Below are positions 44,733-61,348 of a DNA stretch of 64,000 nucleotides, piece after piece. The stretch comes from Perkinsela sp. CCAP 1560/9 (Eukaryota > Protista > Euglenozoa: Kinetoplastea), in the NCBI GenBank assembly GCA_965644495.1, contig CBFFSA010000001.1, forward strand, positions 2,976,001 to 3,040,000, read 5' to 3'. How positions within the stretch are numbered: the stretch's first letter is position 1; each line of letters opens with the position of its first letter. Made by a program: the position numbers and the translations under genes. The notes below the pieces were generated by a model, which was not told the origin of the DNA, made no database searches, and worked only from the letters and a program-made list of their open reading frames with translations.

Positions 44733-45608
44733 AAAAATACTCCCCTTGGCACGAACCAAACTGAAATTCGCGAGTAAACAGTGCTGGATAAAAACAATGT
44801 AACCTTAAATTGGAACATTCATTACGATGACCTTTTCATCCGTATCTCGTCGCAGACAGGTACAGATGAATTGTCACAGGATTGAAGTTTAAAACTTCAA
44901 GACAAAGTCTGCGTTTTAAGCGACTCAGAACAATGTAATTGTTTAAATATGGAATTCTAACCCCTGATTCTAACCAACATGTTCAGGTCAAAGCGCATTA
45001 GTAGAAAAGTATTCATGCAAATCATACAAGGCTGAAACAAAGGTATCATCACGTTAGAAAAATACTCCCCTTGGCACGAACCAAACTGAAATTCGCGAGT
45101 AAACAGTGCTGGATAAAAACAATGTAACCTTAAATTGGAACATTCATTACGATGACCTTTTCATCCGTATCTCGTCGCAGACAGGTACAGATGAATTGTC
45201 ACAGGATTGAAGTTTAAAACTTCAAGACAAAGTCTGCGTTTTAAGCGACTCAGAACAATGTAATTGTTTAAATATGGAATTCTAACCCCTGATTCTAACC
45301 AACATGTTCAGGTCAAAGCGCATTAGTAGAAAAGTATTCATGCAAATCATACAAGGCTGAAACAAAAGTATCATCACGTTAGAAAAATACCCCCCTTGGC
45401 ACGAACCAAACTGAAATTCGCGAATAAACAGTGCTGGATAAAAACAATGTAACCTTTAAATTGGAACATTCATTACGATGACCTTTTCATCCGTATCTCG
45501 TCGCAGACAGGTACAGATGCATTGCCACAGGATTGAAGTTTAAAACTTCAAGACAAAGTCTGCGTTTTAAGCGACTCAGAACAATGCAACTGTGTAAATA
45601 TTGTTTTG

Positions 45609-46168
45609 TCATGCATTCATAGTGCAGAGATAAGCCCCACAGTGTCCTTAGCCGCATACGACAGGTGGATCAAGTGGGGGTTCGTCCTCGCCGGAGGGGT
45701 ACGGGTGCGGAGAGCTGACGTCCCAGGTGCAGAGAGCTCGGTTGTCATGTGCAGGTGCAGAGAGCCGGATGCGCAATACCCATATTACAGTTTCGGGGGC
45801 AATACGGGTACAGAGAGCTGCGACAGAGCCGAGGTGCGGAGAGCTGGGTGACCGCCAGGTGCAGAGAGCCGGGAGGCTCGTGGGCGGAGGACACGTCTAG
45901 TGGTCCTCAAGGGAGGCCACCGTGACGCATTGCCTCCTCGGAAAGGCAGGCACGGGAGAAAGAGAAGCCGAGAGAGGGAAGCACACTCACTCCAGGGGGT
46001 GAGTCGGGAAGGGGTGAAGGGGTGGAAGCGCGTGCCCTGCTTCAACAATATAGAGGGACAGTTTCAGGTTTAGTGCCGGCCGGCAAAGGGCATAGAAATA
46101 CAGTATGCCCGTTGCCGGGGAAAGAAAGGATGAACTAAGGAAAAAGTACCAACAAGGTCCAAAAACTG
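45609..46168. other. GC-rich highly structured non-coding element, copy 1 (unknown family)
   Basis: Six GTRCRGAGAG repeats with mutually complementary spacers, and several further hairpins. Shares three motifs with 58258-58620. Confidence 0.7.
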
Positions 46169-47103
46169 TATTGGAATTCTAATCCTTGTGCAATCAACAT
46201 GTTCAAGTCAAAGCGCATTAGTAGAAAAGTATTCATGCAAATCATACAAGGCTGAAACAAAAGTATCATCACGTTAGACAAATATCCCCCTTAGCAGGAA
46301 CCTACTATGCACTACTACTATACCAATACACTACTGCATGGGGAAAAAGAAATTGCAGAACGATTCAATGAAAACTATTCTACATTTCGCGCTAAATCGT
46401 GAGGAACAAGAAACTCGCGAGTGAAAGTAGTGCTGGATAAAAACAATGTAGCTTTTAAATTCGCACATTCATTACGATGACCTTTTCATCGCTATCTCGT
46501 CGCAGACAGGTACAGATGCATTGTCACAGGATTGAAGTTTAAACTTCAAGACAAAGTCTGTGTTTTAAGCGACTCAGAACAATGCAACTGTGTAAATAAT
46601 TTTTATTGAGGGAGATACCACTCCCTCGCTATCCTCTGGCCCGAAATTTCGCCTCGACAAAAACATTTCCGGAAAAAAAATCGCTAAGAATCAAAGGCAA
46701 CACCACAAATACCAATAATTTGCACCAGTGAGAAACCCCTTCTCCGGATGTTGGCGATACTAGGCTCGGAGGGTAACGTAAAGAAATATGAGTTTCAAAC
46801 CCAGCCCCTTGGAATGAGAATCCCTCGGCAAGGTGTCTCTCGTGTGTTCTCGATCAAAACGAAACTCAGTTATTGTATGTGAAGCCGGGTTTTGCTTATT
46901 ATGATATTTCTTCATGTGTGTTCCGATATCGCTTAGTGATTGTTTTCAATAGCATGTTGGGTTAAGCCTGAAAGCTCCCCTGGTAGAAACTTGAGCTTTA
47001 TGATACGGTCGGCTTTTTTCTATGCTTATCAGGCAGGTTCTCGGGATATGCAACATGTTCGCTCCAAGTGGAGATACCATAAGGAAGATCACGATAATTG
47101 TCA

Positions 47104-57213: not shown

Positions 57214-58085
57214 TCAGTTAAATTTTTTGAGTAAGATTTTAATCAAAATCAGTTAGTGATATTGTTCAAAAGTACACAGCAGAAACGAAGTCAGAACGAT
57301 AATACATGTATACGCATGCATGAGTACGAATACCTGATATGCTATACAGGGGCGCAAATCGGGTGCTGGGGGTCTAAATTTTGTAATATTTTCTCAATTT
57401 TGGAAAATAATAGCGCATTCGAGAGCTCTCGCAGAGGTCTATGTTTTTGAATAGGAAGTTTTCCGGGGTGTAAGGCGGTGCTTAACTGAGCAGAAGTCCA
57501 AAAATGTCACGCGTTGACGACAATGTCATGACTATCTGTTTTAATGTAATCAACTGCCTTTTCAATAGATCACAAAATTTCTATTAGTGTGATACGGACA
57601 GATTTTTGGACTTTGTCCGTATTAAATGGGGGGTGCCCATGGCGCAGAAAATGACGCTATTTCTTACCGATAAAATATGTGTATAATATTAAATATTCCC
57701 CTGCACTTTTACCGGAGGTATCGTATCTTGGTCGAGTGATATATGAGATTCGTCGCCGATTCGCGGCTTCGGTGGATGCTTCCTGATCCATGATGTGAGC
57801 AGATCATTTGTACCACGTGGTGAAGTATCACACTGTTGAGACATGGTGTTGTTATGAAAAATATTCTCTGAATCAAATTCTAAGCACAAAAATGAGGAAA
57901 ACTGAGGAAAATATACTTCAATATTTTTGATATTGCTCAAAACAGGCGTCTAAGCCAAAAAGATAATTTTCTCCGAAAATCGAAATCGGAAGGTAAAAAA
58001 ATTTCCCAAAAAAAATCCGGGCAGGGGGGTCAGGGGGTCCGTATTAAAGGGGGGTCACAGTATGACGACACTTACGGTATTTAGG

Positions 58086-58964
58086 TCAACCTCTCCACGC
58101 TACAAAATCTCTGCGCGGATAAACGCCTTCATTTCGAAGATTTGTATCGTTCGTTAAAGTGACATTGGTATTCATAAAATTGAAGCTCAATGTAGGTAAA
58201 AAACTTGAAATGTCGACAATTCCGCAAAGACTTGGATTGAAAGCCACAAGGTTATGATCATACGCTCGTGGCGCAGAGATACGTCTCTCTGTGTGACGGC
58301 CGATACCATCAGCGCATGACCCGCATACGACGGGTGTCACACAGAGAGTGGAGTGCGAGGTAGGAGACGAGTCGCCCATCGGTCATGCTACAGCACGTAT
58401 AGCCATGGTTCATGCTGCAACACGGTCAAGCCGTGGGTTCATGCTGTCAGATGGTCTATCGTGGATCATGATGCATCATGGGGAGGTCCGTTACCGCCGC
58501 ACTCGCTACAGCATGTAGGGAGAGAGGGGTGCAAGTTCGCATCCCCTATACACGCATACAACGTGTCCCGCTGTAGCACGCCCAGTGGTCCTCAAGGGAG
58601 TCCTCAAGAGTGGTCCTCAAACGTCAAAATTCACTTCTCCCGTAAATTTGGCATCGAAAACAGAAAAGTCTTCTACAGTTTTTGGAAGGAACTCAAAATT
58701 TAGCTTTCCACCTATGTTCAAAAGATCCCAATTAACTGAGGAAATTTCTGACCGTTCATTGCATGTTACGCCTTGCCAAGTACACACGGATACTATTTTG
58801 ACACGCCCTAACAAACCCCTTCGTTTCGTAGTTTTCCACGATTTCATTTTGTGTCGTACATTTTCAGTAAAGCGTTCCATCATTTGTTCCTGAGGCAGAA
58901 GGGCCATAGATACCTTTCCACGCCGCAGATCACGACCGTCATCGACACAGTATAAGTTTAGCAT
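58086..58964 (-). pseudogene. Leucine-rich-repeat family gene interrupted by a structured insertion
   Basis: QEQMME.F, CTWQGVTCN...I..VNW...GGKLNFEFLPKTVEDFSVFDAKFTGEVNF resembles the expanded LRR family recalled from Perkinsela. The same frame resumes after the insert (HNLVAFN.SLCGIVDISSFLPTL). Confidence 0.6.
58258..58620. other. GC-rich highly structured non-coding element, copy 2
   Basis: 13-bp perfect stem 58285-97/58336-48, four GG(W)TCATGMT repeats with complementary spacers, and motifs shared with 45609-45915. Confidence 0.7.
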
Positions 58965-59608: not shown

Positions 59609-61348
59609 CAGTGGTTTCAGTTGATCTTGCCCCCCCCCTCGGAATTTTGATTTTTTTTATCCATTTTTGCTCATCTTTGCAGCATTGGAGAGATCTCGTT
59701 CCCCTAGCGAAGAGCTTTGCCGCCTTTTTTTCATAGAGACCCTCTGGTGCCCCCTGGGTCCGAAAAACACTGTTTTTTTGGACGTTTTCTGTGTACACAA
59801 CCATTTTTTGTCACATTTTCCCTATTTTTTGTACATTTTGAACATGTAAGTACGAGTAATAGTGTTCTAAATTGATAATTTGAAAGCTCTATGTCTAGTA
59901 CCATCCCTATCGCCTAATTTAATATAGTCAACACCTCTACATTATGCAGACCAGACCCTCTAACCCCAAACAGGGGGAGTACGTACAAGGATGGAATGAC
60001 AAAAGAGAAGACAATCCCCCAATATCCCACAAAGGAACCGTGGCATTACCTCTTTGCGAGAGAAAAGAAATAATAAAGCAACACAAAAAGGGATTAAGCA
60101 TACATAAATTATCTAATAATTTCGGACGTGACCGTCGCACCATAAGAAGAATTGTTAACCTGTGGAAGGAAGGAGAAGATCTTACACCCCAAAAATCCCC
60201 AGGAAAAAAATCATCAAGGCGGTTTAAGGACCTTGTAAAAAAAATTGTGGATGATGAAAACGAAACGTACGATGGTTGCTTAACTTATACTTGGATACAC
60301 GAGCAAGTGCTGAATATGGGGTATAAATGTTCGTTAAATAAAATAAGAACTATTTTGAAAAATATTGATTACGGTAGATGGGCTAAGTCGCCGAACTGTG
60401 ACCTAACTGAGGAACACAAGTCGCAACGTTTGAGATTAGCAAACGAATTGCTTACATGGCCTAAAGAAGATTTAAACAAAATCATTTGGACCGATGAAAA
60501 GTTGTTTACCTGTGGGGTTCATGGGTCTCAGTTTTTCATTGGACCTAAAGGGTGCCAAAGAAAACCTCGCTGCAGAAACCGTAGGTGGTATGGGGGGAAG
60601 GGGGTAATGGCTTGGATGGGTATTAGTGTAGAACACGGATTTTTCTTGCACGTGTTTGAACCCAATGACAATACAACTTATGAAAACGCGCACAAGGTCA
60701 CTGGGGGAGTGATCCTTGACTCCTTTCAGAAGCCTAATGGGTTTTTACATTATCTCAAAGACCACGTTGACAATGTGACTGTGCAAATGGATAATGCTAC
60801 CACCCATAACTTGGCAAAAGGTGAATTGATTAAATATCGTACTAAACAATTGTCTTGGCCAGCGAATTCGCCTGATTTAAATCCAATAGAAAATGTTTGG
60901 AAACAAATGAACGGTATCATAAAGAAAAAAATTAAGCCCCACAATCATGCTACCCTCGCCGATGCCATTAAAAAAGCTTTTCAGATTCTAAAACGTCCTC
61001 AAGAAAAACGTAAAGTGTGCAACACAATTGATTCAGTCCCTAATAGACTTCAAAAAGTGTTGCAAAACAATGGAGGCCATTCCGGATACTAGTTCTTTTC
61101 CTTTAGAGTTAACTTTTGGACATAAAATCCGTTTTTCGTTCTATTTTTGATATGGTAAAAAAATATCATTTTTTATTATTTTGGTCAACTTTCGGGTCAC
61201 CCAAGGGGCACCAGGGGGTCTCTATGAAAAAAAGGCGGCAAAGCTCTTCGCTAGGGGAACGAGATCTCTCCAATGCTGCAAAGATGAGCAAAAATGGATA
61301 AAAAAAATCAAAATTCCGAGGGGGGGGCAAGATCAACTGAAACCACTG
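59609..61348 (+). mobile_element. Full-length Tc1-like transposon, 1740 bp, ~150-bp near-perfect TIRs, TA target duplication
   Basis: TA|CAGTGGTTTCAGTTGATCTTGCCCC ... GGGGCAAGATCAACTGAAACCACTG|TA, enclosing an intact transposase. Confidence 0.95.
59944..61092 (+). CDS. Tc1-family transposase (DD32E)
   Basis: N-terminal HTH, IIWTDEK, VMAWMGIS, QMDNATTH, WPANSPDLNPIENVW and NNGGHSGY*. Confidence 0.93.
   Translation: MQTRPSNPKQGEYVQGWNDKREDNPPISHKGTVALPLCERKEIIKQHKKGLSIHKLSNNFGRDRRTIRRIVNLWKEGEDLTPQKSPGKKSSRRFKDLVKKIVDDENETYDGCLTYTWIHEQVLNMGYKCSLNKIRTILKNIDYGRWAKSPNCDLTEEHKSQRLRLANELLTWPKEDLNKIIWTDEKLFTCGVHGSQFFIGPKGCQRKPRCRNRRWYGGKGVMAWMGISVEHGFFLHVFEPNDNTTYENAHKVTGGVILDSFQKPNGFLHYLKDHVDNVTVQMDNATTHNLAKGELIKYRTKQLSWPANSPDLNPIENVWKQMNGIIKKKIKPHNHATLADAIKKAFQILKRPQEKRKVCNTIDSVPNRLQKVLQNNGGHSGY

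Follow-up and report, generated by a model that had tools for sequence, protein, structure and literature searches.

The structured element at 58249-58617 of the window (the whole 64,000-nt stretch of Perkinsela sp. CCAP 1560/9 DNA analysed here) is a truncated copy of a non-coding, dispersed retroposon family of 560-620 nt, with at least three subfamilies that differ in their structured middles. Most probably, the family is a non-autonomous, SINE-like non-LTR retroposon mobilised in trans by the genome's own LINEs, which code for a reverse transcriptase (RT) plus a restriction-like endonuclease (RLE), through read-through transcription, trans-splicing of a spliced leader (SL) and target-primed reverse transcription (TPRT) in trans. 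Judged from the sequence, its front end appears to be supplied by trans-splicing of the host mRNA leader, and not by a promoter or ribozyme of its own. The host is a Perkinsela-like prokinetoplastid endosymbiont: the MCM3 protein encoded in the window shares 55-60% identity with proteins of Perkinsela type, against less than 49%, along most of the protein, with those of other kinetoplastids.

The initial annotation had recognised two copies of the element by three motifs, all of which we found in both copies (58258/45609, 58321/45652, and 58584/45899), against a chance expectation of 0.00-0.34 matches. The sequence likewise contains the four loop repeats at 58381, 58407, 58436, and 58463, the helices of the long arm and all three GTCCTCAA pieces. 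The second copy had been called diverged, but it is not decayed: only the 5' head of about 260 nt is missing, and the copy starts inside the motif-3 hairpin. The parts of the two copies, the flanking gene and the ORF of a partner LINE are as follows.

58086-58248, minus strand: 3' half of a disrupted leucine-rich-repeat (LRR) gene, in frame with the 5' half when the other allele's 228 letters are counted.
58249-58617, minus strand: the whole insertion, a 5'-truncated subfamily-B retroposon, which shares about 99% identity with ten further B copies and is skipped exactly in the X1, X2, and X3 contigs.
58250-58281, minus strand: 3' tail stem-loop, equal to motif 1 (AUCUCU, a short stem-loop, AUGA), with a shape common to LINE 3' ends.
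58285-58348, minus strand: 3' three-way junction around the motif-2 hairpin (58319-58335), a putative mimic of the LINE 3'UTR fold, based on covariation between subfamilies B and C and on loop matches in LINE 3'UTRs.
58351-58504, minus strand: long arm of subfamily B with four AGCAUGA-type repeats face to face, based on the repeat positions, the predicted fold, and 30 genomic matches.
58505-58577, minus strand: second domain of subfamily B with a second motif-2-like hairpin (58550-58566), identified by its loop pattern.
58584-58600, minus strand: motif 3, the 3' part of a hairpin within which the copy is truncated, from alignment and folds against LINEs.
58601-58620, minus strand: re-copies of motif 3 at the 5' junction (8 nt and 12 nt), of which 58618-58620 are a 3-nt target microhomology, read from the sequence.
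58618-58964, minus strand: 5' half of the disrupted LRR gene with a stop created at the junction, from the translation, a weak LRRNT_2 match, and the other allele.
45601-46171, minus strand: full-length subfamily-A copy (copy 1 of the initial annotation), with the head present and an SL relic at 46150-46171.
L051, 3245-8119: ORF of a LINE with four N-terminal Cys/His repeats, an RT, a CCHC finger, and an RLE motif.

The insertion at 58249-58617 is absent from other strains. The contigs (not raw reads) of three runs, X1, X2, and X3, which come from two samples of one study and are about 1% divergent from the reference, skip the stretch and carry 228 other letters in its place. The RNA-like run X3 spans the uninterrupted form of the LRR gene. 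Since these strains lack the copy and the 228 letters there keep the LRR gene in frame, the insertion is polymorphic and, by comparison with the empty allele, its target was apparently deleted and not duplicated. The simplest reading is a recent insertion with the loss of 228 bp of the LRR gene, the 228 letters having been counted for length and frame.

The stutter reported at the right end of the copy consists of real pieces, which lie at the 5' junction and not in a 3' tail; they are the two re-copies of motif 3. Such re-copies occurred at 9/41 junctions, versus 1.2% of control windows. Target-site duplication (TSD) candidates of at least 5 nt were found in 5 of 27 copies, compared with 2.6 in controls (p about 0.18); they were few and 5-7 nt long, and no regular TSD was found among the 27 copies checked. 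Polymerase-theta-type end joining produces microhomologies, extra bases, and upstream deletions. The same features are typical of truncated R2 junctions (PMC2718515). The ORFs next to element copies lay in the same orientation in 14 cases and in the opposite one in 5, a difference that was not significant. The window also holds a Tc1/IS630-type transposase ORF (59944-61092; DDE_3 and HTH domains), with high-depth repeat ends nearby.

The orientation of the element was settled by a LINE. Locus L051, found via a motif-1 match without the other motifs, carries an intact LINE with one ORF of 1624 aa, and shortly downstream of the end of this ORF comes motif 1 in reverse complement. The RNA strand is therefore minus with respect to the window, motif 1 represents a 3' tail, and the plus-strand orientation of the initial annotation is not supported. 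On the minus strand, the B module with the tail folded at z = -4.2, versus z = -2.1 for the plus-strand stretch noted before.

The family thus has an RT and RLE LINE as a partner with the same 3' tail. The tail of the L051 LINE is 26/28 identical to that of subfamily A, and an SL lies at the 5' end of this LINE; none of the LINE copies compared has exactly the tail of subfamily B. A single ORF with an RT, a CCHC finger, and an RLE motif is the layout of the R2 group, and R2 proteins are the closest solved relatives of the L051 protein. Its N-terminal repeats (CxHxCxxKxxCxHxCCK) had no Pfam or Atlas match; they presumably resemble the C-terminal finger of HFM1/Mer3 helicases. At least 139 matches to the LINE C-terminus were present in the genome, many in long open frames. 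A quick tree of the RT, built with no labelled HERO reference, placed these LINEs in a clade of their own, apart from NeSL-like sequences. In its targeting, the partner does not behave like the CRE/SLACS clade: the L051 LINE splits an LRR gene, and the SL intron flanks no compared copy. One LINE family and a subfamily-C copy lie inside (TG)n tracts (L017:760-1800, L053:2900-7720), and a 21-nt piece of the C module was seen at the 3' junction in L053.

Sequence and folds together indicate that all three conserved motifs are LINE-type signals, namely a 3' tail stem-loop, a 3'UTR hairpin, and an ORF-start hairpin. The tail stem-loop was present at the 3' end of all close-clade LINE copies compared, with stems that are different but complementary. 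The LINE ends that were located solely through protein searches have CUCU, a 3-7-bp stem, and AUGA in common, with differing stem sequences, except for one distant match without them. The motif-2 loop was found within one mismatch in 7/8 LINE 3'UTRs, versus a rate of about one match every 3.5 kb for the window, where the exact loop pattern occurs twice, both times inside the 58249-58617 copy. Motif 3 resembles a hairpin about 100 nt downstream of the LINE SL/5' end, at the ORF start, with compensatory changes between LINE families and subfamilies; for the LINE form of motif 3, 10/14 genomic matches have a LINE C-terminus downstream of them in the same orientation. As motifs 1, 2, and 3 all have LINE counterparts, everything that had been noticed as conserved appears to be a LINE-type signal. 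A conserved mini-ORF over motif 3 was unsupported, three A copies having no ATG.

The collection of genomic copies by motif, as had been advised, gave 166 matches to motif 3 in the 21-Mb genome, whereas the reversed control gave none. We compared the sequence of 51 loci of this genome and sampled the subfamilies at 30 loci taken in genome order, which comprised 11 copies of subfamily A, 6 of B, and 13 of C. They have the head of about 260 nt, motif 3, and the 3' end in common and differ in the middle; no ORF is conserved across the family. The tail was present in 29/30 sampled copies and the SL head in 23/30. The truncation polarity, also singled out for checking, proved to be that of a constant 3' end with variable 5' truncation. 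Three further loci (L052-L054) come from a near-identical strain (98%) and represent more copies of the same species, not independent taxa. A metagenome scan with motif 3 returned 14 matches, all by chance and in bacterial coding sequence; hence no relative outside the species was found.

The proposal of a conserved core with a variable module was borne out, except that the module is not copy-specific: it marks a subfamily, and subfamily B alone has about 30 genomic copies that are 97-100% alike (median identity 99%). The middle module, a structured insert that can be exchanged, sets the subfamilies apart. Heads and modules form mosaics: a B-type head is found on three C copies, and one copy changes from B to A. 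At five loci (L036, L037, L038, L039, L010), different subfamilies, or a LINE tail and then an SL-headed copy, are joined head to tail with no spacer; these tandems likely represent RT template jumps. A fourth short family at L041:2050-2400 carries the SL, the first hairpin, and motif 3, and its motif-3 context is near that of the L054 LINE.

Modules B and C were well folded (z = -4.2 and -5.0, respectively), and that of A was weakly folded (-1.7). The 3' domain of B and C contains five pairs with compensatory changes and 95% of cells paired, which exceeded all 500 shuffles and all slid controls, and its one-sided changes yield G-U pairs on the minus strand only. With only two lineages, this covariation amounts to few independent events. 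The facing-repeat geometry described for the long arm is predicted by folding in A and B, but C has two 77-nt tandem repeats in its place; the B copies are nearly identical, which puts the geometry outside the reach of covariation. The repeat of A is the same as the tail's 5' half (p about 0.007; 7/1000 shuffled tails reach the match), and the resemblance of B's repeat to the 3' half of the tail was not significant. The idea that every module is built from tail pieces was accordingly rejected with the shuffled-tail test, as it holds for A and fails for B and C. Most likely, the modules may serve in RNA stabilisation or as extra protein-binding sites.

The strong folding (z -4 to -5.6), the covariation between subfamilies, and a contig over the element in an RNA-like run would also suit a host non-coding RNA family, a scaffold or guide with a cellular function that LINEs spread secondarily. 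We consider this highly improbable, because the conserved parts appear to be LINE-type signals, the copies are polymorphic, truncated, and gene-disrupting, and no Rfam family corresponds to them. The guide or scaffold RNA of an unidentified autonomous element, one of the candidates of the initial annotation, was dismissed on the grounds that the partner identified is a LINE. A retrozyme was another candidate, and neither a hammerhead core nor terminal repeats were found by Rfam and descriptor searches. At five loci (L001, L013, L027, L036, L043), the truncations fall close together, at head position 139-142 and facing the loop of a hairpin; an RT stop and a cleavage site are candidate readings. 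Were it the latter, five truncated copies beginning near position 140 could mark a self-cleaving, ribozyme-headed element or retrozyme; yet most copies run through this site to the SL, and the head has no hammerhead core, no HDV-like fold (Rfam, descriptor), and no terminal repeats, so that there is scarcely any likelihood of such an origin. In the Rfam search (gathering and E-value thresholds), the only matches were unrelated hairpins outside the elements, and an HDV-like ribozyme was found neither by Rfam nor by a descriptor used without positive-control validation.

Of the view that this is a dispersed, mobile, SINE-like RNA family, the main part is upheld by the 166 motif-3 matches, the RT-encoding partner sharing the 3' tail, the 5' truncation polarity, and the insertion polymorphism, and the retrozyme and guide RNA alternatives attached to it are not. 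In the broad sense the family is a SINE, being short, dispersed, and non-coding, with a LINE-shared 3' end, a constant 3' end with variable 5' truncation, and an empty allele. A classical SINE with a tRNA, 7SL, or 5S head was rejected: there was no Rfam or ARAGORN match, A/B boxes were lacking, and T tracts were internal. A plain SIDE, that is, an internally deleted LINE, was also rejected, since the head and modules match none of six LINE copies except in the SL, motif 3, and tail.

The 23/30 sampled copies with a head start with part of the kinetoplastid SL exon, and the LINEs and other families begin in this way too. Of the 38 nt of the exon, the copies mostly retain 22-31 nt, and in every copy compared the SL stops at the exon boundary. 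It is followed by GTAC in most copies; in six, 14-17 nt are missing and the junction comes directly behind an AG, and a few join at other dinucleotides. In the RNA-like run X3, the same leader is attached to the neighbouring host gene at 57251, behind a TG acceptor. At this trans-splice site (57250-57251, minus strand), the gene has an RF-1 domain and the TG comes just after a branch-point-like ACTAAC. The trans-splice acceptors of Perkinsela are AG (27%), TG (26%), and AT (15%) (PMC5601477), and cis-splicing is absent (PMC11613528). Because the SL relic ends in TG following a pyrimidine-rich stretch, splicing at this TG would restore the most frequent form of the head without change. Two junctions with a seemingly double SL (L019, L054) were discarded as evidence, microhomology or slippage being another possible reading.

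That the element itself is an SL RNA gene was excluded, for its exon is mostly partial, its downstream sequence is different, it is dispersed, and the real gene lies elsewhere. The element could instead descend from such a gene (exon and GT donor) that gained a LINE tail, in which case it would be transcribed as an SL-like small RNA and may donate leaders. Most full-length copies do have the SL and then GTAC, which is 5' splice site-like, and another Perkinsela is reported to have a 468-nt 'SL intron' with over 500 dispersed copies (PMC5601477, Supplementary Note 1.3). The actual SL RNA gene, however, is a 297-bp tandem pair whose intron starts with GTATGAG, unlike the element copies; the same exon is followed by other bases in LINEs and other families; and the AG-joined copies are the expected product of trans-splicing. 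SL promoters, moreover, lie upstream of the gene and are lost on retroposition, and we regard this descent as unlikely. Two full 38-nt SL exons, each followed by GTAT and 297 bp apart (G000 C1:661315-661653), are probably a collapsed SL RNA gene array, and about seven further SL and GTAT copies are dispersed in the genome. The SL core has 539 genome-wide matches, far above this family's share, and several further families begin with an SL. A different short repeat, whose head is tRNA-like (no call by ARAGORN), at L003 and L047:4600-4700, adjoins an SL copy and a LINE tail.

Alternatively, the same retroposon might gain its SL at integration, if the RT left the element RNA and jumped to SL RNA or another RNA bearing an SL. 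Template jumps by R2-type RTs occur in vivo (PMC3414825), and the family contains head-to-tail tandems and chimeras. A jump, in contrast, lands on an RNA 3' end and would carry SL intron, but the SL of all compared copies ends with the exon, and splicing would explain the junctions next to an AG; we therefore judge this route very unlikely.

The preferred reading, trans-mobilisation of an SL-capped RNA, would proceed as follows. Polycistronic Pol II transcription would read through a genomic copy, and SL trans-splicing would give the RNA a capped 5' end, mostly at the relic's TG and sometimes at a downstream AG, as the junction pattern suggests. The RNA would carry three LINE-type structures (5' hairpin, 3'UTR hairpin junction, and tail stem-loop), as homology and covariation indicate, and these may bind the LINE protein. 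TPRT would start at the tail, consistent with the constant 3' end, and the cDNA end would join the upstream DNA via the microhomology and short re-copies seen at the junction, presumably through repair. At 58249-58617, synthesis would have stopped within the motif-3 hairpin, with the loss of the 228 bp of the LRR gene that the other allele retains. We tentatively take a further step, which is quite possible on the same observations: a SINE cycle with neither promoter nor ribozyme, in which the element's own SL relic may act as the trans-splice acceptor that renews the capped head each round, and in which one short-RNA family might parasitise a whole LINE radiation by structural mimicry of three cis-elements while swapping folded middles.

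Several known systems share parts of this arrangement. EhLINE1, the partner of EhSINE1, is of the RLE type. EhSINE1 of Entamoeba histolytica is about 550 nt, non-coding, without a tRNA head, recently mobile, divided into classes by internal repeats, and has a 3' end in common with its LINE (PMC2996970). In both systems, a short RNA appears to be copied by an RLE LINE via common cis-elements. Unlike EhSINE1, the element here has an SL 5' end, middle modules that are unrelated folded domains, and no regular TSDs, and its LINE similarity is mostly structural and extends across many LINE families. The R2 SIDEs of Drosophila, which are likewise non-autonomous partners of an RLE LINE using cis-elements, are passively co-transcribed, keep 5' and 3' cis-elements, and display variable 5' junctions and template jumps (PMC3414825). 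They release their 5' end through an HDV-like ribozyme, are site-specific for 28S rDNA, and are plain deletion derivatives, whereas the present element is dispersed, SL-capped, and mostly of non-LINE sequence.

Among kinetoplastids, RIME, NARTc, and SIDER of trypanosomatids are also short non-autonomous retroposons; they depend on the APE-type ingi/L1Tc, and a Pr77 promoter and ribozyme give an unspliced RNA (PMC1874656, PMC3383444). CRE, SLACS, and CZAR are also kinetoplastid RT and RLE LINEs associated with SL sequence, and they insert into SL RNA genes (PMC12278014). The LINEs and partners here, in contrast, lie in LRR genes, microsatellites, and satellites, and the SL is their own 5' end. 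The genome of Perkinsela sp. CCAP 1560/4 contains hundreds of dispersed SL pieces, some of them next to retrotransposons, which were interpreted as SL genes in decay (PMC5601477), and in dinoflagellate retrogenes a relict SL marks RNA-derived copies (PMC5585692). Compared with these, a structured SINE family with LINE cis-elements is, in the literature searched, described only here; no SL-capped SINE family was described in that literature, where the dispersed SL fragments of the other Perkinsela come nearest. SINEU elements are snRNA-headed, with a Pol II small-RNA head and no internal promoter (PMC4494074), whereas the head here is exon only and appears to be renewed by splicing each cycle.

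Trans-splicing of the host leader would represent a third route, beside Pol III heads and ribozymes, by which a short retroposon RNA acquires its 5' end. The hundreds of 'decayed SL genes' described from Perkinsela would thereby have an explanation that can be tested. The short elements would also provide a natural map of the RNA structures (5' hairpin, 3'UTR hairpin, and tail) needed by a non-site-specific RLE retrotransposon, requirements that have so far been known mainly from R2. Finally, the insertion at 58249-58617 points to an active family that disrupts LRR family genes in some strains and not in others.
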